Shown here: positions 1-63,204 of the stretch, one piece after another | Layout of the letters: each line of letters starts with the position of its first letter | Position numbering within the stretch: the first letter of the stretch is position 1 | Source: Thalia democratica | Lineage: Eukaryota | Length of the DNA: 63,204 nucleotides | Reading direction: 5' to 3' | Assembly: GCA_965202585.1 (NCBI GenBank) | Contig: CBDBBG010000051.1 | Location: forward strand, 62,001 to 125,204 | Translations under genes and position numbers: made by a program | The notes under the pieces: model-generated | The model's database searches: none | What the model saw: only the letters and a program-made list of their open reading frames with translations | Told to the model about the DNA's origin: nothing

Positions 1-1334
1 TTTGTAATACTAAGCTTTTACTTGTGTTGGGTATCTTGATAAAAATTTTCTTTTTATATAAATTAGTTTGTCTGTTTGTACTTAAAAGAATTTATAATTA
101 GTTGTATGGTTTGAAAGTTTCAATGAGTTTAAAGATAAATTTAAGTTAATATAAATGAAACATTTTAGACCTCACAGCTCACAAGTAGTTAATGTTCATA
201 ACTTTTCAAAAACAGACTAAGTTCTAAGACATAATTAGTCTAGCAACATAAAAAGTTTTTACAGCAGTATTATATCAGCACTTATTTAATTAAATAAACC
301 AAATAAATGAGTTATGAAAAATTTAAACCGATAATATTTGTGGCTTAAAACTGAACTTGAACAATTTCAGAAATATCTTAATATAATGATGGCACAATCA
401 TTCATGAATATTTTGATAATTGTGTCTTTATTTAGCATTCACTCACTATGAACAATGTGGCTTTTTATTTTCTACCTGCTTCAAAAAGTTGTTATATCAG
501 TGACTACAAAAACTCAGTAGTTTTGGCAAATATGGCAAAACGATTGAAACTAAATTATAACTAAAATGAGTTTGCAAAAGTAAAGTGTAATGATATTACC
601 TGATGAAAATAAAGGCTTTAAGCTAAATATAATTAATCTTATGCAAATTGTTAAGTAATAAACATGTTTAAAGAAAATAGAAAAAAAAAAATTGTAAAAT
701 TTAGAGTTGAGAACTTAGTTTATACTTTTTTATGAAGTTGTCAATGTAGTTTATATGAGCACAATGAATTACTGTAGCTTAAATATTAAACAATACGTTC
801 AACCAATTATCTTTACTGCAGTAAAAAATGTAGAAATTAAGAAAAACTTCAAAAGAACAAACTGAAATGAAAATAAAATATAAACAATTTATTTTTTACC
901 AAAAAAAAAAGTATCTAAGGTTTAACATTATGTAAAATAAAAAGTATTTAGTGATCGAAAAAGCTAAAAACCACCCTGCTGTGCTAAGATAGTGTTTCAA
1001 TTTGTAGTTTTTATGAATTTTGTAAAATCTTACATTTTAATGTGACATCACAACTAAATAGTGTTTTGCAAAATTATTTTTTTCAATGAATATTCATTTG
1101 AGAAAAGCACTTGTAGTAAAAACAGCTCTAGATGCTGTAAGTGTAAAGTAACTCTAAATCTTTTTTTTTCTTTTTTATACTGTCTATGTGAGCTACTTAA
1201 GCAAACTCTATTTGATTGTCAATATTCTTGAAGATAAAACTTGATAGTTGTGGCTCATTTTATCTTCTAAAAATCTTATGTTTGTACATTGTGTGAGTAA
1301 GTTTAAGAAAGCATTTGACCTAGTTTGGGAACCA

Positions 1335-1880
1335 ACAGTCTTGAAAGTTTATGTTGATAATCTATACTATTTCTCATGCAAATTCTTTAAAAAATGTTTT
1401 TAATTTATCTTCTAATTCATCATATAATGCATTCATTGTACTTACAGTCTTGAAAGTTTATGTTGATAAAATATACTATCTCTCATGCAAATTCTTTGAA
1501 AAAAGTCTTTATTTTATCTTCTAATTCATCATATAATGCATTCATTGTACTTACAGTCTTGAAAGTTTATGTTGATAATCTATACTATTTCTCATGCAAA
1601 TTCATTGAAAAAGTCTTTATTTTATCTTCTTATTCATCATATAATGCATTCATTGTACTTACAGTCTTGAAAGTTTATGTTGATAACATATACTATCTCT
1701 CATGCAAATTCTTTGAAAAAAGTCTTTATTTTATCTTTTAATTCATCATATAATGCATTCATTGTACTTACAGTCTTGAAAGTTTATGTTGATAATATAT
1801 ACTATTTCTCATGCAAATTCTTTGAAAAAATTCTTTATTTTATCTTTTAATTCATCATATAATGCACTCATTATACTTAC
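1335..1880. repeat. Minisatellite, about 5 x 109 bp
   Basis: ACAGTCTTGAAAGTTTATGTTGATAA recurs at 1335, 1444, 1553, 1661 and 1770 (periods 109/109/108/109). Confidence 0.95.
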
Positions 1881-4110
1881 ATGATGCTATAAAAAAATCA
1901 TCAAGAGGCTTTAAAAACTTGCATCTCAGTCTTTGAAATCTTTAAAACATCATTGTAAAGTGAACTGAGTAGAAAAAATTTAAAAGAATTCTTTTGAAAA
2001 TCTTTTGAACTTCTGTAAAATTTTAAAACTTCTAGGTTGTTTCAAATCCTTTGTCTTTATAAGTTGTAACTGTAGCTTTCTCCTCCATGTTGGGTTTAGG
2101 CAATGGATCACACTTTTTTGGATTCTGATTGAAGATTAGTACCTACTACAGCAGCTGTTGAGGTTAGTTTGTTTAATAGTTAATCAGGTTGTTTTAATTT
2201 GTGCAAAACTTAGTATTTTTTGCTAGGGTTACCAGTCAGACTATTGAATATCAAAGTTAAGGATTTTTGGATATTATAATAAAACTTGATATTTTGTCTC
2301 AACTTTTTACTTATTAATATTTGAGTCCTTTTGTTACTATTAAGTTTTTGGAGTGCTCATCCTTGAATAACATAAAGCTTTAGATGTTAATTAAGTTTTG
2401 CACAAATTCAGACTAGCACTTTTATTAACAGAATGGTAATCTTGGTTTGTACCATTAACGTATATTTGTCTTGTTGGGCTTCATTCTCCTAAGATTACTT
2501 GGCTACCTCAATAAAAAGCTTAAAGAAGACTCAAAAATAAATAAAATCATTAAAAAGTAGCAACATTTGTGTTAAAATTTATGAGCTTGTATAAAGAAGT
2601 GTTGTATTCATGAATGAAGCTCAAAGAGACAGTAAGCTAAATGTAGAAGTTTATTTACAACATAAAATTCAAGTTAATTAATTTTGATTGTATTAATGTA
2701 GTTTATATATTCATAGATTAATGATTTGTAAAAAGAAGTACTTCTTAAATTGTGCATAAAAGATAAGTAGCAAGAGTAATTATAAAACAAAGTGTTATTA
2801 GTTTCATAGATTGTTTTTTTTACAAAAGAAAACAGTTAAACCATATCAGGATTAGGTTTGCTAGTAAACAAAATGTTCCAAAATTGTAAGTTTACATTCA
2901 TATATTTACAAAGCAGTTCACAGCAAGCAAAATTTAAAAGTTGTTAGTGCATATGTGTATTGGGTTTATTCTTACCTTTGTTTAATTTTTTTATTCTTCT
3001 ATCACTAACTTCTTTCTCTTCTTTTATCTATCAATAATTTCTTTTGTTCATATGTTTGCACTAATAAGCTTTTGACAACAACTTGCTGTACTGTTTTTTA
3101 TGTATATGACAAATTTAAAGACTAAATTTTGGGAATACTATAAATATTAGTTTAATAGAGCCATGAAGATTTTAAGTGATGTTAAATGCAGAGTATTTAA
3201 GATGCAAGTATTTGACAAAATTTAAAATGAACTACATGCTACCAAACATATGTTATTGACACAAAGTAGTATGGTTTAACTGTTTTAGTTTGTGACAATG
3301 TATAAAAAAGATAAATTGAAATCAGAAAATGTCTTTATTTTATATGCACAATTTAAGAAACAGACAATAAGTTGTTTTAATTCAATTGTTAGTACACTAA
3401 GCATTCAAAGTTTAAGTCTATTATTAAATATATGAAGTAAATTAAAGACTACCAGTTAGTAAATAGTAATGGTAGTAAAAGTGCATGAGAAACCTTTGTA
3501 GTTAATAGATTGGTAGATAGTTACTTAACAATTAGCCCAACGTAACTGTCATGGAAAACTTTAGCTTATGTAAGTTACATGTAAAATGATATCCTGTAGT
3601 AGGAACAGTACAAAACTGAAGTTAAACAAAAAAAACAAACAATTTTTTACATTATGTTCTTTGACAAAAACATATTTGTTACTGAAATCTAAATAAATTC
3701 AACCTGTTTAGTTGAATCTTAAGTGTTTATTTATTTTTGAATAACTAAAGTTTTATACTGTTTTGAATAGATTATAAAAGTAAATCAATTTACGTAAGCA
3801 AGTTAACTGACTATTGTTTGAATATAAATAGAGTACAGTTCAATCATATAAATAGATTTGTGTATGTACACATTTAAAAAATCTGTAGTTTCATATTAAT
3901 CTTTCTTTTTTTATTTGCTTTATTTTCTGTCATTGAAAAGCACACCTATCTATGAGATTGATGAACTGTTTTCTATGTACATGTAAAACATTAGGTAATT
4001 AACTAGGATAATGTAATATCTTAAACTATATTCATTTAATTTAGGCTGTACTAAACCATAACTAAAGAATGCAATTATAACTAAGTCAATACATCTATAA
4101 GGTTTATTCT

Positions 4111-4356
4111 AAGAAGTACGCACCCGCATTAAGTACGCACTAAATTTTTTTATTTCACATTCCCTGTTACAAGTAAAGGTTATTTTTAAGAAGTACGCAT
4201 CCACGTAAGGTACGCACTAAATTTTTAAGCCCCCACACCCATATTTTCAAAAATGGGGAATCCCCCAAACCGAAAACATAGTGAGATTTATTGATGGAGA
4301 TTATTTAAATTTATTTTTTAAGGCATTTCGCCGGCTCCGCCGGCGAAAAATTTTTC
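4111..4356. mobile_element. Probable DNA-transposon end fragment (also 31953-32198 and 59795-60040)
   Basis: GC-richer island with a duplicated AAGAAGTACGCA...GTACGCACTAAATTTTT motif (4111, 4188) and the palindrome TTCGCCGGCTCCGCCGGCGAA. No matching second terminus was found. Confidence 0.4.
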
Positions 4357-4627
4357 ACATTTTTCCTTTTCCCTTTTTCTCCACGGCCTTACTTCTTGAA
4401 GGCCACCTTTTTCTGTCAAATGGACCGTGAGTAGCGTAACTGTCAAACAAATATGTGTTGTATTTGTACGGTCTTTATCTGTTATCTTTTACTAACCTTG
4501 AGCTTATATGATCTAATTTATCAATGTATAACCATTAAAGGCCTGACGGTAATATCGGTTGATAGTTTATTAATTATTGACTGAGTGGTTTTGTATTGGT
4601 GAGTTTGAAAAGTAAGTTTTAGGTAGC

Positions 4628-4732
4628 GGACAAGAATTAAAAAAAAACAAAGGGCTACGGCCGGTCGATGACACGGTGCTTCGCACCTGTCATCTCTCCG
4701 GCCTGCCCTTAGTTTTTTTTTAATTCTTGTCC
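4628..4732. repeat. 105-bp fold-back inverted repeat
   Basis: 21-bp perfect outer stem GGACAAGAATT-A9-C / G-T9-AATTCTTGTCC, then stems AAGGGC/GCCCTT, GGCCGG/CCGGCC, GATGACA/TGTCATC and GGTGC/GCACC around a TTC loop. Confidence 0.92.
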
Positions 4733-4735
4733 TTT

Positions 4736-7700
4736 AGGCCCGGTTACTCTGCTGGTCGGCACCCCTTTTAGTTATGACTTGGATGTACGAGTAAGTGTGC
4801 TAGTACTTCTAAGTCATAACTAAACTTAGTTTTCACTTAAAGTTAAGTTATAACAGACTAATTTCAGTAAATATTTACGCCTTAATTTGTATAAATAATT
4901 TTTAAAATTACACACTAACAAAATACTGTTTTTGTACAACATACTATTTTCACTCTATCGTTGTATGAAAGATAACAAATAAAGCCTTCTACAAATTACT
5001 CATAGGCGTAAGTAGATTACTTACTGAGTTTTAAGCGTTGTCAGTCTAAAAAGTGATGGGGCAAAATATGCTATTATTATTAGTTAATGTAATACATTGA
5101 GTTCTTAACAGTACAAATCATATACTTTTGTAAGTAATGTTGGCAATATAGTGTGTATGTCACTTATATAGAAACTAAACAAAAGTTTTCAATTTACATA
5201 AGTAAATACTTACGTCTTAATTTGTATAAATAATCTTTAAACTTATACACTAACAAAATACTGTTTTTGTCCACAATTTTTCAAGTAATTTTGTGTTTTT
5301 TATTTTTGTGTATCACAATTATTACGTCATAACCAGTTAGTCTCATACTGTATAGACTTAATAATCTTTACTAACACTACAGTTGTGTATTTGATTATAG
5401 TTTATTTAGTTGTGTTTTAAAATGCTCTAAACTTTCAAGTTAGCAAGAGCAACTTATTTATTTTATAAATACAGACATTAATAAGATTAGTTATATACAA
5501 ATAATAAGTATTGGATAAGGTGTATCTTAATTAAACTAATACATGTAAGTCTTAAAGTTTTATTGCTACGTAAAGGTTAAATCAAAATTACAATCAACTC
5601 TTAATACTTAATCAGTAAGTATCATCTTGTTAACTATAAATTTAAAACATTAAACTGTTTCTTTCAAGTAGTAATTGCAATTCAAATAAACATTTCGGTT
5701 AACCTTGTTGATGTTTTCAAATAAAGAAGACATTTCGTCTATGTAAAATAAAAGGTAAATTTTTTCTCTCAACTGTAGAAATACCTCGGCTTCTGCCTCA
5801 CATTCTTATTATTATACTTCTTTTTTAATATACTAGTTTTAATACAGGTCAACTTTATTCTTGTCATCAAAAATGTACTTCTAACTAAACAATGTCAAGT
5901 TCTTTGGGAATTTTATTGTATTTAAAATCTACCTTATAAATCCTGTATAACTAATTTTATATTTATCTCCACAATAAGAACAGTTAACTAACTTCTTCTG
6001 CTATGTTTTTATCGCCGATCTTTTCTCAACATTTTTGAAATTTCTTATTTCTTTTATGACCAATATAAAGTTCAATACAATTAGGTAACTGTTCTTTAGT
6101 TCTGATTTTTTAATTTCTGCAATATCCTTGTTGAAATAAATGACTTAATCAATAAGTTATTTAGCATAATATAATAGTTTTATATCAGTACTATTTTATT
6201 AAACTTTGGTAGTTTTTTAATTTACCTATTAGTTTTATTATTAGTGAATTAGTATTTTAACTTTTAGTATAAACTCTTGATATTAATTAATTTTTCGTAA
6301 ATTCTCGGTTGAATTAATCATTTTATCATCTTGTTGAGATACTATTTTATTTTTAGTTTATTTCCTTACTGTTTCTAAGCTTGTAGGATTAGTTCTTAAA
6401 CATTTTGGTTTGTTTAATTATATTGAAGTTGCTGCAATTATATTGAAGTTAAAGCAATTTATTTCGGGGTTTTCCAAACCAATTTCTAAATTTTACCCTT
6501 GGCACGACTTAAAAAAATAAACTCCCTTTACTGTTGAATTACCCATTTACGTTTTCAATTTCTCACTGTTTTTTGCCCCCTATAAAGGGCGATATTGTCC
6601 GCTTAAGAAAAACTCTGATCTAAACAACTTCCATTCCGTTTTCTATTACTAGCTTTTCCAACGATTGGGGTTTCAGTTTAACGTCATTAAAGTAACTGTA
6701 ATTTTAATTTTTTATCTGCTACTAAAAATCCAAAAGCAATTAAATGCACTAATTTGATATTTTATTCTTTTGTAATAATGTTTTAGTCACCAATAATGAT
6801 TTAAGCGCTTAAAATAGGTCCTAAAAAAGGATGAAGAGTTATTTACGCCACGCCAACTCACTTCTACTACTTTGATCTGTTTTGCTATTGTTCTTTAAGC
6901 CCCGTCACTCTGTTTGTTGGCACCCTATGACTTGGATGTACGAGTGAATGTGCTCGTACTTCTTAGCGCAACTAAACTTGATTTTAACAGGGCTGCCACT
7001 TTACCTGGAAAAACCTGGAGTTTGACAATTTAGGCAAAAACCACTTAAAATAGTATGGAATTTCTAATGGTTTATATGTGTTTAGTAGTAAAATTTTGAT
7101 TTTACTCAAAACATCTATCATATAAATAGAAAAGTTTTTTCATAATAAAACTTTTTATTTGTTAAAAAACATACTTAAAGTAGCTTTACAGTATCTTTTT
7201 AATATTTCTATACTACTTAACACAGTTTCTTACCTTAAACTTAACTTTAAACTAAAAATAGACCCAAAAATGTGTATTTTTAAAATCCTGAAAGAAATTC
7301 GAAAAACTTTTTAAAAACGAGTGGCGACCCTGTTTTGATACTAATATTTAAATCATTGAGTATAACAGACTAATTTCACACCACGTTGTATTTATTGATG
7401 ACAGATAAAGCTTGTACATGTTACTCATGAGCGTAAGTAGATTACTTACTTAATTTTAAGCGTCGTTTGTCTTTAAAAAAAGTGTTTGGGCAAAAAATGC
7501 TATAATTGTTAGTTAATGTAATACATTGCATTCTAAAAAGTACAAATCATATACTTTTGTAAGTAGTATCTTTGCAATATTGTGTGTAGGATATTTATGT
7601 CACTTAGATGGAAACAAAGCTAAATTTTTCCATGTACATTTCCCGTTTACATAAGTTAATGTTTACGTCTTAATTTGTGGAAATAAATTTTGGCCATCTT

Positions 7701-8070
7701 TAAAAATTAGACACTAACGAAGTACAGTTTTTGTCCACAATTTTTCATGTATTTTATTATTTTTATTTATTTATAATCGTTACGTCATAACCCGGTAGTC
7801 TTATACAGTTTAAACTTGGTAATTTTTACTAACACTATATTTGTATATGTAATATGCATATTATGTTAATAATTAATACAGACACTAACTTATTTAGTAA
7901 ATTAATTAAACTAGCTCTTAATACTTAATCATTAATTAACATCTTGTTGCGCTGGTTTATATGACTATTTCTAGTTTTATGTCACAAACAATATATGTTA
8001 ATATCTATAAACTTAAAAGATTAAACTGTCTTTTCAAGTAATAATTACAGTTCAAATATACATCCCACTT
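4736..8070. repeat. Diverged direct repeat pair (about 4736-5690 and 6898-8070; also 32578-35912 in copy 2)
   Basis: Shared blocks in the same order: ATGACTTGGATGTACGAGT (4774/6927), TATAACAGACTAATTTCA (4849/7361), GCGTAAGTAGATTACTTACT (5007/7431), AGTACAAATCATATACTTTTGTAAGTA (5111/7539). Confidence 0.88.
6988..7332. mobile_element. Non-autonomous hAT-type MITE (345 bp)
   Basis: TIRs CAGGGCTGCCACT / AGTGGCGACCCTG (reverse complement CAGGGTCGCCACT). It is absent from the homologous site near 4840 in the first repeat copy. No clean 8-bp TSD. Confidence 0.75.
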
Positions 8071-11000
8071 AGAGGCTTTATGAGTTATTGTTTAATGTTA
8101 TTATTCAGCTGTAGTATATGTTGTGCCATTTAAGTTTTTGGTCTACAAGGTTGTGTATATCATACATTATTTTTGCTAATGTCTTATCTAATCACAAACT
8201 TGCTGTTAAGTCACTTTAAAAGAATTGAATCTTCTTAGTTTGTATGTTTGAAAGAGCATCAATTTAATATAAATAACTCGGCCGTAACACTGTTCTGTTC
8301 ATATTTAAAATAACAAAAGAATTTTACCTATTATATAGTTAATTCCAATTATTAATAAATATTTTACCTTATGTCTCAAACAATAAACGGTTTTTAAAAA
8401 ATAAAATCGATATGTATGACCTTATTTTACACTAATATAATGACTCTAAACCAAATACTTATAAAACTATGCCAATTAAGTAACCATTTCAATTTCGAGG
8501 TCGTATTTTATTTTAATTGTTTAGTTGTTTATAGTGCCATTTAGTTTTATAAGATTGTATAAATAATGATCTTATTTTCTGTCAATTAGTTTGAAAATTT
8601 CCTTAGTTTTACATGTTTTAAAGCTCGTTTACTTGGTTTTAACTTTTCTGAATCTATATTTTTTTACTGTACTTTTTTTGAAATTTATATATAAAGAAAG
8701 GTTAAAAAACTGTGATGGGGATTTATGTAGCCTTATATTCTTTAGTTTTAAATCATTTACGGGTCAATCTAAGTCTTACCAACAAAAAACGAATCATGTT
8801 TTAGTTAATGTTTCATTAGTTATTACTGTAGAATTACTTGAAAGTTTGTTTAAAAAAAATTGGTTTTTCATGAGTTTGTTCTAAAGTTTGTTTATAAGTC
8901 TAATTCGTTATTATATTCTAAGTTTATTTTTTTCTTGATTTAATTCTACTTCGATAAATTTTGGTTTAAAAGTGAGTTTTATAGTATAAAGTGTGTTTTA
9001 CTCATGGTTTAGCTATATTTTTAGTTAACACTTCATTGTTTTGTTGGTGTTTCTGTACAATAACTTTACAACTTAAATACCATGGTTTATTTGAAAACTT
9101 TTCCACGGGTTCTCTTTAGTTAATAATATTTGTAAATAGTTTTAGTTCTTTTAGATGCAAGTAATTAAGCATTTTCTCTTAAGCGCAAATAATTTTCAAT
9201 CAAGTTCAAATTTCTCATGATAAACGTCTTAGTTTGTCCACATAAAACTGTATGCATTTAAAAAGTAACGAAATATCTTTTTTTATCCATTTAGTTTAGG
9301 TGTTTTAGTTGAAATTCATTTAGTCTTATTACACACTATTATAACGTCATCATATAGTCTTATTAAGTATGTTATTTTTCTCTAAATTTTAATAACATAT
9401 GCTTTAAAGTGTCAAGATGTATTAATGAAGAGCTTCTTTTAATGTTTTATCATTCACGTTCTAGTTTTTTCTTAGTTATTGTTATTCGTTTGTTAATTAT
9501 TACACTTGTTTTTGTTTATTATTAATGATCTGTAGATGATCTACTTGGTTGGTTTGATTTTGGATGCAATTAAACGTTAGTATAGTAGAAATCTACGCAT
9601 GTGTTTATACTTAATTTAAGTGAAGCAGTTGTTTACGGATTTGATACTGTTTTCCTTTAATTTCACTTCATAACTACAAATAATCCTGCTTTGTACTACC
9701 TTATCTACTTAGACTATTTACTCTACATCTAATTTTACTAAAAAAGTCTGTTTATTACCAATATAAAATTCAATTGAATTCCTAAATCTAGTTTTTAAAT
9801 GTCTGCATCATACTTGTTTAAACGAATTGCTTACCTTACAAAGTATTAACTAAAGATTTTAGTTTTAAATGAACCAACTTTTACTAAGCATTCAGCGTTC
9901 AATTGACAATGGTATTATGGCAACTCTAGTTCGTAAATTTGCCCTACTTTTGTCAATATTTACGTTATTCAATCATTTCAATTTGAATAAATATTTTTTT
10001 AGCATAGAGCTTTGAGTTAAGATTCATGTCTTATTCGTAATTAAATATACTTATTCTCAACAAGACTAAAATTAGATTTAATTTCGTATTTTTAGTTGGT
10101 ATAAAACTGTTTTGTTCGTATTACTGTGATGTTAACTAAAATTTTCTTTAACTATGGTTTCTCTTTAATCAATCTAATACAGACATATATATTTTTTGTA
10201 CTATTCTCCTATTATTTTCAGAACGTACTGATTTTTAAATTAAAGTTTGCTCTTAGTATTTTATCATTAACTGTCATCTTGTCGCGCTGGTTTATATGAC
10301 TATTTCCAGATTTATTCTTAAACAACATTTAAGTTAAACTCACAGATAATAATTACAGCTCGAATATACTTCCTATTTAAAAGCTTTGTGATTTTTTAGT
10401 CTTAGTTTCACGTCCTGTAAAATGTATTAAGTCTTCTACCGCCAAACATTATATGTGTCTCTAAATTTGAAAATTTAACGATAGCCAACTTAACTTATGT
10501 CTTTATTATAATCAAGGCCAGTTCAGAAACCGTTTTAATTTTGGGGTCTAGTTTAGTTGTTGTTTACAGTAATTTTGATAATTCCATATAGAGCCAAGTT
10601 TTTTTTTGTATTTCATACACAATGGTCTTGTCTAAGTTGTATTTTTGGAAAATAAATACTACTAAATTTCTAAAAATAAGTACTACATTTTGAGTCTTAT
10701 GAAATCTAAACTGTTTGGTTTAACAATGCCTCAATATTTTATGCATGTTTCAATAACTAAAACAGTTAACTAAATGTTATGTTTTATTGCCCATCTTTTT
10801 TTAACGATTCTGACTATTCATACTTCTTCTGTTTATCACCAATATAAAACCAAATGGAATTAGGCAAATGTTTCTTATTTCTCGTTTTAAAGTCTGCAAG
10901 TTTTCCAAATGTAACTACTTCGTTGTAGCACTCAATGTAAACAATGTAGTTTCTTCTAATTTTATAGGGACGTTTACCATTGGATAAGTATTGACTTAAA

Positions 11001-12920
11001 GTTAAACAAAACTCAGAATTAGTTCAAAAGTGAGTTTTACTAATGATTTATTTTTTCCCTCTCAAAAAAATTAGATAAAATTTTAGTCAATATTTCATTG
11101 ATGTTACTGTAGAGTTTTTTAGAAGTTTTTTTTGATGTTTGTACAGGTTCTTAAATGAATTTTCTAATGTTTATTTGTAAGTCTAATTTGTTATTATACT
11201 TTAAATTTATTATTTCTTAATTTGATACTCCTTTGATAAATTTTGGTTGAAAAAAGGTTCCTGGATTGAAGTGTATGTTTTACTCATGATTTATTTTACC
11301 TTAACAAGACTAAAGTCAAATCCAGCTTTATATTTCTAGTTAACACTTGATTGTTTTGTTGCAGTAAAATTATTTAAAAGTTTATTTAAAAACAAATCTA
11401 CGGGTTCTCTTCAGTTAATGATGTTTGTGTATAATCCTAGTTTGTTGTTACATTGTATTTTTTTGTCAAGTAATTTAGTACTACTTCTAGCCCAAGGTTA
11501 ATTATATATATTTATATTTAAGGTGTATTTTGTATTTTTTGAAAATCTTATAGGGTCGTTAAAGGTAGAATAAATATTGATTTATAAATAAAAAAACTCT
11601 AGATTAACTAAAATACATGTTTCACTCTTAACGACATTAAATTGTATCAAACTTCGTATGTTTAGATAGCTTATGACTGTCAAATTATTTGAAATTTTGT
11701 TCAACCTGAAGTAATAGCGTTATTGTTAATTCAGCCCAAAGCTAATTATATATTGAACATAATTTTATTTTTTTTAACAGACAGGTTTAAACTAAAAGTA
11801 AAACTTAATGTTTTATAGTATATATCCTTGGTGTTGTACTATGAATGATGCAGTTTTATAGTAGACAACCTTGGTATTATTCTATAAGTAACACAACAGT
11901 TTTGCGTTGTAGTTTAGTTTATTAGTATCTATCTAGTATTGTAATTTAATTATTTTATGGTATTTACTGCTAAGTCTCATAAATAGCAAACAAAGTTTTA
12001 GTTAAGTATTTAGTTATACTTTAGATGTTTGTTTATAAAAGTCAGTAAAAAGTTGTTCATGTCACTTTTTATTTTAATTTCAATTAGATAAACAGTTAAT
12101 ACTACGTATTTTTATAACGTAAATTTCATAAGCAACCACATGGATTAATTTCACAATAAAAGCAATGTTTTAACGATTCAACAGTTTTAAATAAATATTG
12201 TATTTAAATTTGTTAAAATTAATTTGTAATCGATTTTAGATATTATATTTTAGTAGCAAATGATAAGACAAGAGTGACTAACTAAAACAATAGCTATTTC
12301 AATTACATTATGTTACAGTTCGTCTATTTATAAAAGTTTACACCAATAAGTCTTGTTTTCACGTAGACTAAAATTTAATTATATCACTATTTTAGTTTAA
12401 TTACAATAAAATTTTAACAACTTATAATACTTGTTAAAATTTAAACTAGCCTTAGCTCTATGTTACCAATCTAAGAAATTGACAATATAGACTACATTAG
12501 TAATGTTTAAGTAAGTAGTGAGAGTTAATTTATTTTCATTTTCTATATTTATACTTATTTTTGGTTTAAAGCTTTTCTTTGGTCTTAAAACAAACATCAT
12601 ATTATACTGTTAGTAAATTATTAAACTTTCCATTTTATTAGTTATTTTATTGTAATATTTTTTTACCCAAATACTTTTAGATCTTCTTAATCGTTGAAAT
12701 GACGTAACAATCAAATTATCTGATTTTAATTTTATTTATTCACTTCTTTTACTAAAGCACTATATTTTTTTTTCTTATAAACTGTTTAAATTTTATCTTT
12801 TTATTAAATCAATTTTTTTAGTTATACATGACAATCAAAACCTTGTAAAAAACTGATTAATAATAATTTTAATAATAGTAATATATCTACTTAACGTTTT
12901 TTAAAGTTCAGACTTATAAC

Positions 12921-17653: not shown

Positions 17654-17655
17654 CA

Positions 17656-45495: not shown

Positions 45496-45502
45496 CATTT
45501 TT

Positions 45503-50948: not shown

Positions 50949-51520
50949 TCACGATTTAAACAAGCAGCTGAACAGTTTGGGCACCAGAACGGGCATCAAC
51001 CCGGCAACCACAGCCACGATCATGTTCTTGTGCTCCCACAAAAACCCCCTGTTGCGAGAACGCCACTTTTCATGCACTTCCGCCATCCGCTCGCGACTCC
51101 TCCTGCTGATGTTCAGGCACGGCTCCACCTCCTCCAAACCGCACTCTCCGAGCAGGGAAATCCCCGACAGCCCCATGTAGCTGTGGAGGGGGTCGGCGTG
51201 GACCTGCGGCCACTTGCCCATCCCCCCGGTCAGCGGGTCCTGGGTGGAGAGGACAAAGTGGACGGCTTCTTCCTTGGACACCGCGTCGAGGTGGCCGACA
51301 ATCTTCAGGGTGGATCCGATCCAGAAGGTGTAGCAGGTGTCGTCGTCCTTGTGCGGTCGGCCGTGGAACCCGCACCGCTGCCGCCACAGCAGCCAGTTGG
51401 TCAGCTTGTCCATCTTGCTTCCGCCCAGCACCTCGTCCAGCTTGCCCATCATCTTCAGCGAAGCCACCGCGCAGAACGTCGACCCGCCGTGGCTCTCGTT
51501 GCATCGTCCCTGGCCGAAAC
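50949..51520 (-). CDS. PGGT1B: GGTase-I beta, coding exon 3 (copy 2)
   Basis: Same translation as copy 1, offset +27842. Confidence 0.95.
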
Positions 51521-51729
51521 CTGTCGTTTGAAAGTTGATGGGTTTTTCACATCTCGCTTGGTTTTAATACTTTTTCAAAGGTTGTATAGTTAACATGGTA
51601 TGAGAAAACGCTAGTGATTTTAAATAAAACAGCTGAAAGAATTTTTGAAGATTAAAATATATTTTCAAATTTTTATTGTTACATTATTATACGTTTTACT
51701 TTGTTCATATGTTATTCTACAACACTAAC

Positions 51730-51926
51730 CTCCGTCGTAGGAGAAACTGCTCGCGATGAACTCACACGCTTTTGTGACGTCGACGCACGAGAAGTCGTTG
51801 AGTATGGTGCACACGCACATGGCGCAGTACATGAACCTCATGTCCCTCTCGCCATTTTCCACGCACATCTCCTTGAAACCACCGTCTTCCAGCTGGAGGG
51901 CTCTGATGCCTTCCAAGCAGCCTTTT
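51730..51926 (-). CDS. PGGT1B: GGTase-I beta, coding exon 2 (copy 2)
   Basis: Same translation as copy 1, offset +27842. Confidence 0.95.
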
Positions 51927-53619
51927 CTGTTGATGAGTCAGTTGCTTGTTGCGTTAAGAAAAGAAATTGCTGTTTAGCACGTTTTGGTTTATTTTTTCTC
52001 AAAATAAGCGCTTGTGTTTATGTCAGTTTTGTTATACTTTCATTGCCTTGTATAAACACCACTATTGGTATCTTAAAAGTGCATACATCCATGTAGTTTA
52101 TATTATTGAAGTTTGTGATTTAGTTAAAATTTAAGTGAAAATTAAAATGAGTCAATAGATAGAGATCTTTTTAAATATACACTTTATTGCCAATGATGTC
52201 ATTAAAACAGAGAAATTCAAGTCTTGATGCTAACAAGTTTTACATCAGTGACTTTATACTTAAAGTAAAATACATTATTGACACTTAAAAAAAATACTGA
52301 GAAAGTCATGTAACTTGTTATAAATTATAAAAAGTTACTCAGTATAGTACACATTATTACACTCTTAGTTTTTTAATCAACACAACTTCTGAAGTAGTAA
52401 AACTTACTTAAGAAACTTTTTAACAGAAGTATCTAATACAGTTAAAACAAAACTTTTTATACTTAATATACGTATAACTAATATATTAACATTGAATTAC
52501 TAGTCTACATTAACGCTAACAAGTAATAGAAACAGAATCAAAACATGAAAACATTACTTTGCTGAAAAGAAAACTGCTGACTATCTTTGAATCAGTTTTG
52601 CTAAAAATAAAGAATGCTAGTATATGACAAAGGTAGCTAAAGGCTTTATGTTAAAGTTTATCTTAATATAAATTAATATATAATGATATCAAAGATTAAA
52701 TATACACCATAGCTTTACTGAGTGGAAACTTTATTTTTAATTTATTATATTTATTATAAACGAACATGTTCTATATCCTGTATATGATTATTGACTGTTA
52801 GAAAATAACACTGAAATAACTTTGAAAAATTAAAACAAATTAGTATGATTTAATTAATAGCTATAAAAGTTGACTTTTAGTACAGGCATCTTACATTTTT
52901 TTTAAACATGAATTTGCAATGTCTATAACTGAAAATCTGTTTATAAAGCTATAAAAATTCAATGTTATATAAAAATTATAATGTTATTGTAGTAGTTTAA
53001 TTAAAATAAATTAAACAAATGTTTGATTGCTTATTATGTAACCTTTGAAAAAAAGTTTTAAATATATTTTCATAATCTTTTTTTGATTGAAAACTTTTGA
53101 AGTTTTATGTTTATTAAGCAAAATGTTATGAACACAAACAAATTTTAAATCTAATTTAAACCTACTTTATAAATCACTGTAAAAATATTTTTAAATGCAG
53201 AAACTAGCGCATGTAGCAAAAAAAAAATAAATTGGTGATAATTTTAGTTCAAGAATTTTTCTTTTTAACTTGAAGAATTTTTTGATCAACTCTGAGAGTG
53301 TTTGATAATTTAAATTTTAAATAACATTTAAAATGATAACAAACCTTTTTTTAAATCAAAGTCTATCGCTGTTAGACTAAAAGTTTTCTCAAAAATAGTT
53401 AATAAGCTAGTATAAAATTTAAAAAATTTTAAAGATGCAAAACTTTACTAAATTTGTCTCCATAATATTTATCAAATTTATAAGAAAAGGTAATCAGACA
53501 TTGTCAAACACAACTAATCAACTCTTATCAAATTATATAAAAAAAAAACAGTTCAATTAATCAACTAAACAAATCTTATAGTACTTAAGATTTAGAAAGG
53601 ACAAAAAAAAAGTACAAAC

Positions 53620-53978
53620 CTGTCAACTCTTGACAAGTCATCCCCCAATATCAGCAATATCGACAGGGCGCAGTAAGTCATGGCAACGTGGGACGTGTTG
53701 TTTCCATTATCACACGCCCCATTAGAATCCCCTCCCATGAAACCGCACCTGTGCAAGTTGTCCCCGCTCTCATTGGATACTATCTGCAGCGAGTATATCC
53801 AATCGACAAGCTCTTCCTGATCTTTCAACACGTGGAGGGAATCCAACACGTCCAATGCCGACACGCAGAAGAAAATGATGGTGAGGCGTTGCGAGTCGAG
53901 CACACACATCTGGCTGGGCAGGGTGTTGAGGACCCGCGTGAAGTACTTGACGTGCTTCTCCTTGTAGAAATCACTCAT
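53620..53978 (-). CDS. PGGT1B: GGTase-I beta, coding exon 1 (copy 2)
   Basis: Same translation as copy 1 in the ORF track, offset +27842. Confidence 0.95.
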
Positions 53979-55488
53979 GTGTTCGTTTTAATTTAAATTT
54001 TGCAATAATCTGTATGCAAAAGGTAGAAGTAGAATTTGATATAAGATTTTTTAAAGAGAATATTATACTTAGTAAAAGTAGAAAAAAATCCCATGACCTC
54101 AAAATTTACTACTTAACCTATCAAACTAAAGAATACAATGCTTTATCATTTTTTGTTAACTTTTAACATTTTCTTTTTAGTAAACTGATTAGTCTATATT
54201 TGCAACATGGATATTTTGTTTAGAAGATAAGACTTAACATAATTGTTCTCAGTAAAACCTGGGTAAAAATAAAAAGCAGATGTATGTAAGTGAACTACTA
54301 TATCTATTTCCAAGTATAAGTATATTTTTCATTTTTAGAAAAAAAAAACTATTTTGTTGAGATATGAAGTAAAATTATTTGAAATATCTTCATCAGTCAA
54401 CTTACTAAGTGAAAATAACAATGGTATATGTTCAAGTACAAGTATATATAAATTGTGGAAAGCCTCAAGCTATCACTTGTATAACTTTATTATGTTGTTA
54501 ACTATTTGACTTTTGAGGGTATCACTTTGCTAAAAATTAAATGTTGAGGAAAATGTGCAGGTTTAATACTATAATGTAAAAGTCTTAAAAATGTTGTACA
54601 CAAACTTTGAAACAAGAGTCTGGGTTAGTTTAGTTGATTCACCTAGCCAAAAAAAAATTGTTATGATCAAAAGTGGTAACACTTTTTTAAGTAAACACTT
54701 TTCAAAAAAATAGAAATAACTGTATGATGTGTAATTGTCTGAAACTGCTTGCAATATTTGCTTGTAAAAAGAGCTGTTAATTACAACTTCATAGTTGAAA
54801 TATTTTTGGTTTTAATACAGATAAAGCATAAGTTAAAAACAAAAAATACATTGTGTAAGATGAATAGAATTTACTAATTTATAATACAATAGATTAAGTT
54901 AAAAAAATTCAGGACCAAGTAAAATAAATGACCCAAACTTTTGACAAGTTAAAAAATGACCTCGAAAGTGTCATTAAGTAAAAATAATGATCCCAGATAT
55001 ATTTTTACAACAAAAATTAACTATTTTCAATTAATTTTCACTTTGGTCACTTTTGCAACAATAAAAATTTTGCAGGAATAAAAATAAAAACTTATCAAAA
55101 AATACCAACCAAGGATGAGGGTTAAGGGTAACAGTAATAATAAAAAAATATCGACCAAAAGTAAGGGGTAACAATGATAGTTAAAAAATAGTGATATTAA
55201 ATATGTATACACTTATAATATAAATAATAATTTTTAATTACTGACCAAGTGTAAGGGTTATGGGTAACAATGATAATTAAAGAATTAAGTAAAAATAATG
55301 AACCCAAAAATTGAACAAGTAAATAATATGTCCCTAGAAAAATTTGGATTGAGTAAAAATAATGACCCAAAAGTCATTTATTTTACTTGATTTCAAAAAC
55401 AAAAACAATAGTAAAATCCAACAGACAGATATTTCAACTTGTTGTATGGACATGTGATAAAATAAAATAAATTTAAAAGATCACTTAC

Positions 55489-55666
55489 AAACTTTCTTGT
55501 ATGAACTTGAGTCCCTCACTCCTATACCTCAACTCAGTTTCAGAAGGAATTCCATCTTCAAAACTAGATGTTTTCTTCAGACCAGCCTTCTCCTAATACC
55601 AAATAGGCTTGCTCAGTTTATAGAAGGTTTTTTGGTGATGACATTAAGTTGGTTTTAATATATTTT
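55489..55666 (-). pseudogene. CCNK: Cyclin K-like N-terminal exon, disabled (copy 2)
   Basis: Same sequence and same lesions, offset +27842. Confidence 0.82.
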
Positions 55667-57018
55667 CTGTTAGAAGTTTAATAATTTGTAATACTAAGCT
55701 TTTACTTGTGTTGGGTATCTTGATAAAAATTTTCTTTTTATATAAATTAGTTTGTCTGTTTGTACTTAAAAGAATTTATAATTAGTTGTATGGTTTGAAA
55801 GTTTCAATGAGTTTAAAGATAAATTTAAGTTAATATAAATGAAACATTTTAGACCTCACAGCTCACAAGTAGTTAATGTTCATAACTTTTCAAAAACAGA
55901 CTAAGTTCTAAGACATAATTAGTCTAGCAACATAAAAAGTTTTTACAGCAGTATTATATCAGCACTTATTTAATTAAATAAACCAAATAAATGAGTTATG
56001 AAAAATTTAAACCGATAATATTTGTGGCTTAAAACTGAACTTGAACAATTTCAGAAATATCTTAATATAATGATGGCACAATCATTCATGAATATTTTGA
56101 TAATTGTGTCTTTATTTAGCATTCACTCACTATGAACAATGTGGCTTTTTATTTTCTACCTGCTTCAAAAAGTTGTTATATCAGTGACTACAAAAACTCA
56201 GTAGTTTTGGCAAATATGGCAAAACGATTGAAACTAAATTATAACTAAAATGAGTTTGCAAAAGTAAAGTGTAATGATATTACCTGATGAAAATAAAGGC
56301 TTTAAGCTAAATATAATTAATCTTATGCAAATTGTTAAGTAATAAACATGTTTAAAGAAAATAGAAAAAAAAAAATTGTAAAATTTAGAGTTGAGAACTT
56401 AGTTTATACTTTTTTATGAAGTTGTCAATGTAGTTTATATGAGCACAATGAATTACTGTAGCTTAAATATTAAACAATACGTTCAACCAATTATCTTTAC
56501 TGCAGTAAAAAATGTAGAAATTAAGAAAAACTTCAAAAGAACAAACTGAAATGAAAATAAAATATAAACAATTTATTTTTTACCAAAAAAAAAAGTATCT
56601 AAGGTTTAACATTATGTAAAATAAAAAGTATTTAGTGATCGAAAAAGCTAAAAACCACCCTGCTGTGCTAAGATAGTGTTTCAATTTGTAGTTTTTATGA
56701 ATTTTGTAAAATCTTACATTTTAATGTGACATCACAACTAAATAGTGTTTTGCAAAATTATTTTTTTCAATGAATATTCATTTGAGAAAAGCACTTGTAG
56801 TAAAAACAGCTCTAGATGCTGTAAGTGTAAAGTAACTCTAAATCTTTTTTTTTCTTTTTTATACTGTCTATGTGAGCTACTTAAGCAAACTCTATTTGAT
56901 TGTCAATATTCTTGAAGATAAAACTTGATAGTTGTGGCTCATTTTATCTTCTAAAAATCTTATGTTTGTACATTGTGTGAGTAAGTTTAAGAAAGCATTT
57001 GACCTAGTTTGGGAACCA

Positions 57019-57564
57019 ACAGTCTTGAAAGTTTATGTTGATAATCTATACTATTTCTCATGCAAATTCTTTAAAAAATGTTTTTAATTTATCTTCTAAT
57101 TCATCATATAATGCATTCATTGTACTTACAGTCTTGAAAGTTTATGTTGATAAAATATACTATCTCTCATGCAAATTCTTTGAAAAAAGTCTTTATTTTA
57201 TCTTCTAATTCATCATATAATGCATTCATTGTACTTACAGTCTTGAAAGTTTATGTTGATAATCTATACTATTTCTCATGCAAATTCATTGAAAAAGTCT
57301 TTATTTTATCTTCTTATTCATCATATAATGCATTCATTGTACTTACAGTCTTGAAAGTTTATGTTGATAACATATACTATCTCTCATGCAAATTCTTTGA
57401 AAAAAGTCTTTATTTTATCTTTTAATTCATCATATAATGCATTCATTGTACTTACAGTCTTGAAAGTTTATGTTGATAATATATACTATTTCTCATGCAA
57501 ATTCTTTGAAAAAATTCTTTATTTTATCTTTTAATTCATCATATAATGCACTCATTATACTTAC
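57019..57564. repeat. 109-bp minisatellite, unit copy 3
   Basis: 1335-1880 plus 55684. Confidence 0.95.
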
Positions 57565-60311
57565 ATGATGCTATAAAAAAATCATCAAGAGGCTTTAAAA
57601 ACTTGCATCTCAGTCTTTGAAATCTTTAAAACATCATTGTAAAGTGAACTGAGTAGAAAAAATTTAAAAGAATTCTTTTGAAAATCTTTTGAACTTCTGT
57701 AAAATTTTAAAACTTCTAGGTTGTTTCAAATCCTTTGTCTTTATAAGTTGTAACTGTAGCTTTCTCCTCCATGTTGGGTTTAGGCAATGGATCACACTTT
57801 TTTGGATTCTGATTGAAGATTAGTACCTACTACAGCAGCTGTTGAGGTTAGTTTGTTTAATAGTTAATCAGGTTGTTTTAATTTGTGCAAAACTTAGTAT
57901 TTTTTGCTAGGGTTACCAGTCAGACTATTGAATATCAAAGTTAAGGATTTTTGGATATTATAATAAAACTTGATATTTTGTCTCAACTTTTTACTTATTA
58001 ATATTTGAGTCCTTTTGTTACTATTAAGTTTTTGGAGTGCTCATCCTTGAATAACATAAAGCTTTAGATGTTAATTAAGTTTTGCACAAATTCAGACTAG
58101 CACTTTTATTAACAGAATGGTAATCTTGGTTTGTACCATTAACGTATATTTGTCTTGTTGGGCTTCATTCTCCTAAGATTACTTGGCTACCTCAATAAAA
58201 AGCTTAAAGAAGACTCAAAAATAAATAAAATCATTAAAAAGTAGCAACATTTGTGTTAAAATTTATGAGCTTGTATAAAGAAGTGTTGTATTCATGAATG
58301 AAGCTCAAAGAGACAGTAAGCTAAATGTAGAAGTTTATTTACAACATAAAATTCAAGTTAATTAATTTTGATTGTATTAATGTAGTTTATATATTCATAG
58401 ATTAATGATTTGTAAAAAGAAGTACTTCTTAAATTGTGCATAAAAGATAAGTAGCAAGAGTAATTATAAAACAAAGTGTTATTAGTTTCATAGATTGTTT
58501 TTTTTACAAAAGAAAACAGTTAAACCATATCAGGATTAGGTTTGCTAGTAAACAAAATGTTCCAAAATTGTAAGTTTACATTCATATATTTACAAAGCAG
58601 TTCACAGCAAGCAAAATTTAAAAGTTGTTAGTGCATATGTGTATTGGGTTTATTCTTACCTTTGTTTAATTTTTTTATTCTTCTATCACTAACTTCTTTC
58701 TCTTCTTTTATCTATCAATAATTTCTTTTGTTCATATGTTTGCACTAATAAGCTTTTGACAACAACTTGCTGTACTGTTTTTTATGTATATGACAAATTT
58801 AAAGACTAAATTTTGGGAATACTATAAATATTAGTTTAATAGAGCCATGAAGATTTTAAGTGATGTTAAATGCAGAGTATTTAAGATGCAAGTATTTGAC
58901 AAAATTTAAAATGAACTACATGCTACCAAACATATGTTATTGACACAAAGTAGTATGGTTTAACTGTTTTAGTTTGTGACAATGTATAAAAAAGATAAAT
59001 TGAAATCAGAAAATGTCTTTATTTTATATGCACAATTTAAGAAACAGACAATAAGTTGTTTTAATTCAATTGTTAGTACACTAAGCATTCAAAGTTTAAG
59101 TCTATTATTAAATATATGAAGTAAATTAAAGACTACCAGTTAGTAAATAGTAATGGTAGTAAAAGTGCATGAGAAACCTTTGTAGTTAATAGATTGGTAG
59201 ATAGTTACTTAACAATTAGCCCAACGTAACTGTCATGGAAAACTTTAGCTTATGTAAGTTACATGTAAAATGATATCCTGTAGTAGGAACAGTACAAAAC
59301 TGAAGTTAAACAAAAAAAACAAACAATTTTTTACATTATGTTCTTTGACAAAAACATATTTGTTACTGAAATCTAAATAAATTCAACCTGTTTAGTTGAA
59401 TCTTAAGTGTTTATTTATTTTTGAATAACTAAAGTTTTATACTGTTTTGAATAGATTATAAAAGTAAATCAATTTACGTAAGCAAGTTAACTGACTATTG
59501 TTTGAATATAAATAGAGTACAGTTCAATCATATAAATAGATTTGTGTATGTACACATTTAAAAAATCTGTAGTTTCATATTAATCTTTCTTTTTTTATTT
59601 GCTTTATTTTCTGTCATTGAAAAGCACACCTATCTATGAGATTGATGAACTGTTTTCTATGTACATGTAAAACATTAGGTAATTAACTAGGATAATGTAA
59701 TATCTTAAACTATATTCATTTAATTTAGGCTGTACTAAACCATAACTAAAGAATGCAATTATAACTAAGTCAATACATCTATAAGGTTTATTCTAAGAAG
59801 TACGCACCCGCATTAAGTACGCACTAAATTTTTTTATTTCACATTCCCTGTTACAAGTAAAGGTTATTTTTAAGAAGTACGCATCCACGTAAGGTACGCA
59901 CTAAATTTTTAAGCCCCCACACCCATATTTTCAAAAATGGGGAATCCCCCAAACCGAAAACATAGTGAGATTTATTGATGGAGATTATTTAAATTTATTT
60001 TTTAAGGCATTTCGCCGGCTCCGCCGGCGAAAAATTTTTCACATTTTTCCTTTTCCCTTTTTCTCCACGGCCTTACTTCTTGAAGGCCACCTTTTTCTGT
60101 CAAATGGACCGTGAGTAGCGTAACTGTCAAACAAATATGTGTTGTATTTGTACGGTCTTTATCTGTTATCTTTTACTAACCTTGAGCTTATATGATCTAA
60201 TTTATCAATGTATAACCATTAAAGGCCTGACGGTAATATCGGTTGATAGTTTATTAATTATTGACTGAGTGGTTTTGTATTGGTGAGTTTGAAAAGTAAG
60301 TTTTAGGTAGC

Positions 60312-60416
60312 GGACAAGAATTAAAAAAAAACAAAGGGCTACGGCCGGTCGATGACACGGTGCTTCGCACCTGTCATCTCTCCGGCCTGCCCTTAGTTTT
60401 TTTTTAATTCTTGTCC
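60312..60416. repeat. 105-bp fold-back inverted repeat, unit copy 3
   Basis: 4628-4732 plus 55684. Confidence 0.92.
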
Positions 60417-62671
60417 TTTAGGCCCGGTTACTCTGCTGGTCGGCACCCCTTTTAGTTATGACTTGGATGTACGAGTAAGTGTGCTAGTACTTCTAAGTCA
60501 TAACTAAACTTAGTTTTCACTTAAAGTTAAGTTATAACAGACTAATTTCAGTAAATATTTACGCCTTAATTTGTATAAATAATTTTTAAAATTACACACT
60601 AACAAAATACTGTTTTTGTACAACATACTATTTTCACTCTATCGTTGTATGAAAGATAACAAATAAAGCCTTCTACAAATTACTCATAGGCGTAAGTAGA
60701 TTACTTACTGAGTTTTAAGCGTTGTCAGTCTAAAAAGTGATGGGGCAAAATATGCTATTATTATTAGTTAATGTAATACATTGAGTTCTTAACAGTACAA
60801 ATCATATACTTTTGTAAGTAATGTTGGCAATATAGTGTGTATGTCACTTATATAGAAACTAAACAAAAGTTTTCAATTTACATAAGTAAATACTTACGTC
60901 TTAATTTGTATAAATAATCTTTAAACTTATACACTAACAAAATACTGTTTTTGTCCACAATTTTTCAAGTAATTTTGTGTTTTTTATTTTTGTGTATCAC
61001 AATTATTACGTCATAACCAGTTAGTCTCATACTGTATAGACTTAATAATCTTTACTAACACTACAGTTGTGTATTTGATTATAGTTTATTTAGTTGTGTT
61101 TTAAAATGCTCTAAACTTTCAAGTTAGCAAGAGCAACTTATTTATTTTATAAATACAGACATTAATAAGATTAGTTATATACAAATAATAAGTATTGGAT
61201 AAGGTGTATCTTAATTAAACTAATACATGTAAGTCTTAAAGTTTTATTGCTACGTAAAGGTTAAATCAAAATTACAATCAACTCTTAATACTTAATCAGT
61301 AAGTATCATCTTGTTAACTATAAATTTAAAACATTAAACTGTTTCTTTCAAGTAGTAATTGCAATTCAAATAAACATTTCGGTTAACCTTGTTGATGTTT
61401 TCAAATAAAGAAGACATTTCGTCTATGTAAAATAAAAGGTAAATTTTTTCTCTCAACTGTAGAAATACCTCGGCTTCTGCCTCACATTCTTATTATTATA
61501 CTTCTTTTTTAATATACTAGTTTTAATACAGGTCAACTTTATTCTTGTCATCAAAAATGTACTTCTAACTAAACAATGTCAAGTTCTTTGGGAATTTTAT
61601 TGTATTTAAAATCTACCTTATAAATCCTGTATAACTAATTTTATATTTATCTCCACAATAAGAACAGTTAACTAACTTCTTCTGCTATGTTTTTATCGCC
61701 GATCTTTTCTCAACATTTTTGAAATTTCTTATTTCTTTTATGACCAATATAAAGTTCAATACAATTAGGTAACTGTTCTTTAGTTCTGATTTTTTAATTT
61801 CTGCAATATCCTTGTTGAAATAAATGACTTAATCAATAAGTTATTTAGCATAATATAATAGTTTTATATCAGTACTATTTTATTAAACTTTGGTAGTTTT
61901 TTAATTTACCTATTAGTTTTATTATTAGTGAATTAGTATTTTAACTTTTAGTATAAACTCTTGATATTAATTAATTTTTCGTAAATTCTCGGTTGAATTA
62001 ATCATTTTATCATCTTGTTGAGATACTATTTTATTTTTAGTTTATTTCCTTACTGTTTCTAAGCTTGTAGGATTAGTTCTTAAACATTTTGGTTTGTTTA
62101 ATTATATTGAAGTTGCTGCAATTATATTGAAGTTAAAGCAATTTATTTCGGGGTTTTCCAAACCAATTTCTAAATTTTACCCTTGGCACGACTTAAAAAA
62201 ATAAACTCCCTTTACTGTTGAATTACCCATTTACGTTTTCAATTTCTCACTGTTTTTTGCCCCCTATAAAGGGCGATATTGTCCGCTTAAGAAAAACTCT
62301 GATCTAAACAACTTCCATTCCGTTTTCTATTACTAGCTTTTCCAACGATTGGGGTTTCAGTTTAACGTCATTAAAGTAACTGTAATTTTAATTTTTTATC
62401 TGCTACTAAAAATCCAAAAGCAATTAAATGCACTAATTTGATATTTTATTCTTTTGTAATAATGTTTTAGTCACCAATAATGATTTAAGCGCTTAAAATA
62501 GGTCCTAAAAAAGGATGAAGAGTTATTTACGCCACGCCAACTCACTTCTACTACTTTGATCTGTTTTGCTATTGTTCTTTAAGCCCCGTCACTCTGTTTG
62601 TTGGCACCCTATGACTTGGATGTACGAGTGAATGTGCTCGTACTTCTTAGCGCAACTAAACTTGATTTTAA

Positions 62672-63016
62672 CAGGGCTGCCACTTTACCTGGAAAAACCT
62701 GGAGTTTGACAATTTAGGCAAAAACCACTTAAAATAGTATGGAATTTCTAATGGTTTATATGTGTTTAGTAGTAAAATTTTGATTTTACTCAAAACATCT
62801 ATCATATAAATAGAAAAGTTTTTTCATAATAAAACTTTTTATTTGTTAAAAAACATACTTAAAGTAGCTTTACAGTATCTTTTTAATATTTCTATACTAC
62901 TTAACACAGTTTCTTACCTTAAACTTAACTTTAAACTAAAAATAGACCCAAAAATGTGTATTTTTAAAATCCTGAAAGAAATTCGAAAAACTTTTTAAAA
63001 ACGAGTGGCGACCCTG
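62672..63016. mobile_element. hAT-type MITE, unit copy 3
   Basis: 6988-7332 plus 55684. Confidence 0.75.
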
Positions 63017-63204
63017 TTTTGATACTAATATTTAAATCATTGAGTATAACAGACTAATTTCACACCACGTTGTATTTATTGATGACAGATAAAGCTTGTA
63101 CATGTTACTCATGAGCGTAAGTAGATTACTTACTTAATTTTAAGCGTCGTTTGTCTTTAAAAAAAGTGTTTGGGCAAAAAATGCTATAATTGTTAGTTAA
63201 TGTA

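Follow-up and report, generated by a model that had tools for sequence, protein, structure and literature searches.

The stretch of DNA considered here, hereafter the window, comprises 63,204 bases of the genome of Thalia democratica and corresponds to the final part (C60:62001-125204) of C60, an unplaced contig of 125,204 bp. It has a G+C content of 26%, and a unit of 27,842 bp is repeated in it head-to-tail 2.27 times. In this unit, a gene for the beta subunit of GGTase-I (PGGT1B) lies together with three tRNA genes, a large repeat module here called the backbone, and interspersed repeats (Table 1). GGTase-I is an obligate alpha/beta heterodimer, and PGGT1B is normally a single-copy housekeeping gene.

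When the window is compared with itself at a shift of 27,842 bp, 12 mismatches and no insertions or deletions (indels) are found among the 35,362 bases compared. The number of copies, the 12 substitutions and the absence of net indels, all reported in an earlier reading of this DNA made from its letters alone (the sequence-only reading), are thereby confirmed. One mismatch is located at position 14091, while the other 11 are gathered in a cluster of 174 bp. The same constant period, again with no indels, extends over the whole of C60, which holds 4.50 units in total. Along the contig the 11-site cluster has two versions, which follow one another as A,B,B,A, whereas the substitution at 14091 is confined to a single copy; apart from these differences, the array-type copies in C60 are identical. 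Another copy of the repeat, at C60:6317-69520, differs from the window at 23 variant sites. Outside the cluster, a copy-to-copy comparison of about 97 kb revealed only one single-nucleotide polymorphism, from which it follows that the expansion of the array is very recent or that its homogenisation is still ongoing. As for the cluster itself, both versions bear derived sub-blocks with respect to the paralogues on C5 and C6; these paralogues were searched for donors, and neither version is explained by them. To judge from this pattern, the cluster probably represents short conversion tracts.

Table 1. Position of the array units and of the features recognised in them (window coordinates).
Feature	Position	Second copy	Strand	Description
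Array unit, first window copy	1..27842			C60:62001-89842; B version of the variant cluster, T at 14091
Array unit, second window copy	27843..55684			A version of the variant cluster
Array unit, third copy, partial	55685..63204			C60 ends within the array, at unit position 7520
PGGT1B exon 1	25778..26136	53620-53978	-	359 nt, ATG at 26136; PF00432 positions 1-101, E 1.4e-26
PGGT1B exon 2	23888..24084	51730-51926	-	197 nt; PF00432 positions 106-166, E 2e-17; AG/GT flanks
PGGT1B exon 3 and stop	23107..23678	50949-51520	-	572 nt; PF00432 positions 185-304, E 1.9e-34
Native PGGT1B/tRNA locus part	17060..26523			~9.5 kb; homologous to C6:70288505-70299405 and, inverted, to C6:70299506-70306815; BLAST 84-96%
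tRNA-Ile(AAT), tRNA-Asp(GTC), tRNA-Asn(GTT)	17580..17987	45422-45829	+	ARAGORN, Rfam RF00005, 59-65 bits
Backbone module	27548..44463			16.9 kb (unit 27548-27842 plus 1-16621); dispersed large-unit tandem-repeat (macrosatellite) family
11-substitution cluster	18408..18581	46250-46423		174 bp; distinguishes the two unit versions
Interspersed repeat	19123..19995			~880 bp; dozens of copies, ~87% identity, on all large scaffolds
Very high-copy short repeat	21101..21300			summed k-mer depth 25,000-35,000 in two organisms

The GGTase-I beta gene of the unit

The sequence-only reading described PGGT1B as an intact open reading frame (ORF). The gene is indeed intact, but it is not a single ORF: it is composed of three exons on the minus strand, which form a coding sequence of 1128 nt for 375 amino acids, with an uninterrupted frame and two GT-AG introns. 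Together, the exons span the Pfam prenyltransferase alpha-alpha toroid domain (PF00432) end to end and correspond to residues 19-365 of rat GGTase-I beta, all protein searches having been carried out with exon-wise queries only. In particular, exon 1, which is followed by a GT donor, matches residues 19-143 of the rat protein (E 2.9e-30), whereas in the profile scan of the animal's own genome the match of exon 3 stretches to positions 165-304 of PF00432. In the PDB search, exon 3 matched residues 228-365 of rat GGTase-I beta with an E value of 1.7e-42, against 1.6e-27 for RabGGT beta, and its best named relatives are all GGTase-I beta subunits, from rodent, snail and shrimps, with 46-50% identity, which sets the gene nearer to GGTase-I beta than to RabGGT beta or FTase beta. 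Asp269, Cys271 and His321, the zinc ligands of the rat enzyme (rat numbering), align identically and are all encoded by exon 3. The gene therefore resembles canonical GGTase-I beta (rat/human PGGT1B, PDB 1N4P chain B) in its full toroid, in its conserved zinc ligands and in having GGTase-I beta rather than RabGGT beta as best PDB match, and differs from it in having three exons only, a high G+C content at third codon positions (GC3, 0.80), an extra hydrophobic tail and multiple copies.

The hydrophobic tail, of about 30 residues, is encoded at the end of exon 3 (23107-23220) and is lacking in the rat enzyme. A 908-bp contig from Tara Oceans encodes an exon 3 that is 87% identical, in which the tail is almost unchanged; its retention at this distance points to a conserved feature of the lineage rather than to read-through junk. 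Small shares of the stretch are also contained in marine and seawater metagenomes, in agreement with an animal that is marine and probably planktonic.

From a compositional perspective, the exons of PGGT1B, with 51-62% G+C, stand out from their setting of 26% G+C. An unrelated prenyltransferase beta gene at C1:79761183-79762598 is also GC-rich, and across both genes GC3 is 0.80-0.90 in surroundings of about 26-35% G+C, while in a third prenyltransferase beta gene (C1:68.87 Mb) GC3 is 0.33-0.47. Codon G+C is thus strongly gene-specific in this genome, and a high GC3 is not peculiar to the array.

Evidence of transcription was found in a transcriptome-like run of 47 Mb, obtained from a different sample of this organism (all sequencing runs were consulted as Logan contigs, in which depth is given as one k-mer mean per contig). 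A spliced contig of 1027 nt, with no indels relative to the gene, aligns to 26032-25778, 24084-23885 and 23675-23104 and thereby joins exons 1, 2 and 3; its last junction, with an ambiguity of three bases, is equivalent to the GT-AG model. The gene structure is therefore transcribed and spliced in the species, and the copies in the array of the assembled animal are presumably expressed too. The longest plus-strand ORF over the gene, a frame of 226 amino acids at 23071-23751, was rejected as a gene: it lies opposite exon 3, in antisense, and Pfam gave no match for it. Matches to the alpha subunit (PPTA) of the heterodimer were found at three loci, none of which is arrayed.

The PGGT1B locus on C6 and the position of the array

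The whole 802-Mb assembly was searched both with the Pfam profile and with the DNA of the gene, and PGGT1B was located only in C60, in five copies, and at C6:70294283-70299013; two further PF00432 loci, both on C1, are genes for other prenyltransferase beta subunits. Over 4.3 kb, the C6 copy has 92.5% identity with the unit. Its coding sequence differs from that of the array at 23 of the 1128 sites (2.0%), with five amino-acid changes, and the ratio of nonsynonymous to synonymous divergence (dN/dS) between the two is 0.07-0.095, with dS of about 0.07. Such a ratio shows that both lineages were under purifying selection for most of the time since their separation. In exon 3 of the C6 copy, however, one additional C at C6:70294755 (CCC to CCCC) causes a frameshift, which is either recent or a consensus error. 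Be it real or not, the assembly has no intact PGGT1B outside the array. Given this frameshift in the one copy outside it, the array is the probable source of the animal's functional GGTase-I beta subunit, if its copies are expressed as we suppose. The array gene had been regarded in the sequence-only reading as a paralogue, and a genome search for a separate canonical PGGT1B had been proposed. This search, now extended over the 802 Mb, returned beyond C60 the frameshifted copy only, and that copy belongs to the same C6 locus: the array lies at the native locus and holds the only intact copies, and its description as a paralogue of a separate canonical gene is not supported.

The C6 copy lies in a contig of 36 kb (contig X, C6:70263406-70299405) enclosed between two 100-N gaps, and the contig that follows the second gap (contig Y, from C6:70299506) shows homology to the unit in the inverted sense. 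The first base of contig Y corresponds to unit position 21545, and the first base of C60 to unit position 21546. When contig Y is reverse-complemented and joined to C60, the alignment runs without gaps across the joint, with 96.8% identity to contig X and 94.3% to the unit. Moreover, the first 620 bases of C60 are C6-like at nearly all informative sites, and the sequence becomes array-type from about 620-643. On this alignment evidence, C60 is the continuation of contig Y and has its place, reversed, in the gap C6:70299406-70299505, at about 70.30 Mb. At the start of C60 stands an older and more diverged unit, an edge copy such as the border of a homogenised array would be expected to have. 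It is on this left side only that the array is seen to join its chromosomal flank.

Contigs X and Y are inverted homologues, in which stretches of 10.1, 3.4 and 1 kb match at 90.3%, 86% and 96.8% identity, respectively. Their homology ends sharply at X:70277482 and Y:70318652, and the other ~14 kb of contig X have no second copy in the assembly, save for one transposon-like repeat. The sharp edges and the uniqueness of the remainder make an inverted segmental duplication more likely than a haplotig kept in the assembly.

Considered as a whole, the region C6:70263406-70340000 has a palindrome-like appearance, with an unassembled centre: the arms of the inverted duplication, at least 15 kb long and 86-97% identical, flank the gap into which the array fits, one of them carrying the frameshifted PGGT1B and the other leading into the array.

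Copy number

The sequence-only reading proposed that the depth of the unit be compared with that of single-copy sequence, and a comparison of this kind, made on Logan k-mer depth against the C6-type copy, shows the amplification to be real. In run X1, a DNA run of the same organism, the contigs that are 100% identical to the unit have a k-mer depth of 394-465, against 43 for a diverged contig of the second, C6-type PGGT1B copy. The same proportion is obtained at single positions, as the C6-type letters at 22829, 23024, 23030 and 23055 account for a depth of 42 out of about 484-514. The resulting ratio of array-type to C6-type depth is about 10:1, with the C6-type copy as an uncalibrated baseline, and suggests about 10 copies per haploid genome if the C6 copy is homozygous and single, or about 5 on average if it is heterozygous. 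Furthermore, just 12 variant places reach a share of at least 10% over 6 kb of the locus in this run, which indicates that the copies of the array are truly near-identical. In run X3, from a related organism or sample, the locus occurs in several diverged versions with depths of 63-178, none of them fully array-type; this run offers no baseline.

Composition of the unit

The unit is a chimera of a host locus and a repeat module. Its native part contains the tRNA trio, an interspersed repeat of 880 bp, PGGT1B and about 390 bp upstream of this gene. In a breakpoint alignment, contigs X and Y are still alike to the left of about 17060, where the unit diverges from both, which places the junction of the array just left of this point. 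The three tRNA genes are intact in each unit, as had been noted from the sequence. They form part of a dispersed element of 1.9 kb, which is likewise present intact on C5 and in contig Y, where it lies next to the array. It had been suggested that PGGT1B was amplified by hitch-hiking on a tRNA array, but the trio is a single dispersed element and the repeated backbone is a different module, of 16.9 kb.

The backbone is collinear, at 79-93% identity, with an array at C6:66.23 Mb (32.2-kb period, 32,212 bp), with another at C6:77.34 Mb (~18.5-kb period) and with contigs C307, C922, C1292 and C610, this collinearity being read from the coordinates of search matches only. Parts of it recur in arrays with a period of about 28,015 bp (C559, C536 and C227) and in an array with a period of 5,522 bp at C4:84.44 Mb. 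The array at C6:77.12 Mb, with a period of 22,248 bp, is also among those that share modules with the unit, the identity across all of them being 75-93%. On the basis of these shared modules, the large-unit arrays appear to form one macrosatellite family, with a concentration in the distal part of C6 and among the unplaced contigs. The native PGGT1B locus is itself located within this macrosatellite-rich stretch of C6 (66-77 Mb).

Origin of the array

Taken together, these data are probably to be explained by a tandem amplification that is real, chromosomal and very young and that took place where PGGT1B natively lies, at about 70.30 Mb of C6, in a zone rich in large-unit repeats. The very young amplification of a 27.8-kb unit with a GGTase-I beta gene and three tRNA genes, which was the central claim of the sequence-only reading, is supported by the present results. 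In terms of mechanism, unequal (non-allelic) recombination or replication slippage would have duplicated PGGT1B together with its macrosatellite neighbour. Subsequently, unequal exchange would have expanded and homogenised the array to some 5-10 near-identical copies, and the leftmost unit would have remained as an older, diverged edge copy. In this process PGGT1B was most likely a passenger of the dynamics of the array and not the target of dosage selection, given that the loci of the alpha subunit, its obligate partner in the enzyme, are not arrayed. The event is of an ordinary kind, namely a gene-bearing, macrosatellite-type young tandem amplification.

Several points weigh against this interpretation. 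The transcript contig belongs to a different individual, and 14 of its 1027 bases are unlike those of the array copy (98.6% identity). The frameshift of the C6 copy, which falls in a run of C, could be a consensus error, in which case an intact single copy would exist next to the array. On the right, the assembly does not reach the boundary of the array, C60 ending inside it, and the seam between C6 and C60 rests on the exact abutment of two assembled pieces. The depths are those of Logan contigs and not of raw reads, with a single-copy baseline that is not independently calibrated. Finally, if the C6-type copy were an allele, the array would be heterozygous and the number of copies per haplotype would change.

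This last possibility can be formulated as an amplification specific to the individual, in which contig X would be the single-copy allele of the other haplotype, retained by mistake in the primary scaffold, with about 10 copies on one chromosome and 0 on the other. The situation of contig X, 36 kb enclosed between two 100-N gaps and inverted beside its homologue, is compatible with such an arrangement, and so is the divergence between the C6 and array coding sequences (2.0%), which is close to the 1.4% that separates the array copy from the transcript of another individual. Yet the homology of contigs X and Y amounts to only 86-90% over 13.5 kb and ends abruptly, and the 14 kb of contig X that have no other copy, the transposon-like repeat excepted, are unlike a redundant haplotig. 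We consider a heterozygous amplification possible but doubtful.

With regard to the amplification at the native locus favoured here, a wider formulation can also be put forward: the backbone family, as on distal C6 and on the unplaced contigs, would repeatedly build new higher-order arrays and sweep host genes into them, so that the essential PGGT1B would now be intact only in an unstable array of variable copy number. We regard this broader proposal as unlikely, albeit worth keeping in mind.

A selected dosage, by which an increased amount of the PGGT1B beta subunit, or of the three tRNAs, would be advantageous, as in the amplicons of insecticide and herbicide resistance, is in our opinion distinctly unlikely. 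It would account for a gene that is intact in every assembled array copy and under strong purifying selection, for near-identical copies indicative of a recent expansion, and for the frameshift in the single-copy neighbour on C6. On the other hand, more beta subunit would meet an unamplified alpha partner in an obligate heterodimer, and two thirds of the unit consist of a repeat module that forms arrays elsewhere without PGGT1B. Moreover, run X3 shows several diverged versions of the locus and none that is fully array-type, although copy number is unreadable in that run without a baseline.

An extrachromosomal circle of 27.8 kb, or rolling-circle concatemers of it assembled as a linear contig, had been listed as an alternative in the sequence-only reading and would fit the exact repetition of the unit, the excess of depth and an unplaced contig whose right end lies inside the array. 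However, C60 begins on the left with a diverged edge copy, which runs seamlessly, base for base, into the chromosomal sequence of C6, and within this one contig the two versions of the unit alternate as A,B,B,A, which makes a circle very improbable. An assembly artefact, that is, a single-copy or two-haplotype region output several times, is the least credible of all: although copies that are identical, in a unit presumably longer than a typical HiFi read, are hard to assemble in number and order, array-type contigs with about ten times the k-mer depth of paralogous contigs in the same run are incompatible with a single-copy region written out repeatedly and have already largely refuted this reading, the copy-specific variants also contradict it, as the sequence-only reading had argued from its substitutions, and the array is if anything under-represented in the assembly.

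Comparison with known systems and significance

Among known systems, the closest likeness is with the gene-bearing macrosatellites of vertebrates, such as D4Z4/DUX4, RS447/USP17L, CT47 and GAGE. In these, too, units of kilobase scale are arranged head-to-tail with an intact gene in each, the interior copies are near-identical while the edge copy is more diverged, and the family is present at several loci. The array described here differs in the far larger size of its unit (27.8 kb), in a copy number of only about 5-10, and in its cargo, which consists of a normally single-copy housekeeping subunit and of tRNA genes transcribed by RNA polymerase III, at the native locus. A second group is that of selected enzyme amplicons, for instance the esterases of aphids and mosquitoes, EPSPS in Kochia and AMY1, which share with the present array an amplicon of tens of kilobases, an intact enzyme gene, copies that are almost identical to one another, and a recent origin. 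Here, by contrast, no selective agent is known, the alpha partner is unamplified and the unit is mostly a repeat module that forms arrays by itself. A search of the literature found no paper on tandem arrays of PGGT1B.

The array illustrates a route by which an essential, normally single-copy housekeeping gene can enter the dynamics of large-unit repeats and come to be intact only inside a young array. For annotators and assemblers, it matters in that gene counts for PGGT1B and for three tRNA families are inflated, or collapsed, by the array, and in that an unplaced contig of 125 kb can be assigned to a specific 100-N gap on C6. Should copy number vary among individuals, the locus would offer a natural system in which to study the tolerance to dosage of one subunit of an obligate heterodimer.

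Other features of the unit

In total, the unit contains 116 stop-to-stop frames of at least 45 amino acids. Ten of the longer ones were compared with Pfam at E values up to 1 and gave no credible match, the only matches being two sub-threshold ones attributable to chance; under the same threshold, no cyclin was matched by the three open frames tested within 26730-27813. Everything coding-like in the unit other than PGGT1B and the tRNA genes had been described as decayed, a description that does not hold, as the rest of the unit is composed of the macrosatellite module and of interspersed, transposon-like repeats. An organelle- or plasmid-like circle, a candidate prompted by the low G+C content (26%) and by the length of 27.8 kb, was also rejected, given that no ribosomal RNA was found in Rfam, that the tRNAs are of nuclear type only and that the gene is spliced. 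Lastly, the short repeat of very high copy number is probably similar to a short interspersed nuclear element (SINE) or to a miniature inverted-repeat transposable element (MITE), and GGCCCCC motifs occur in the loose ends that neighbour it.

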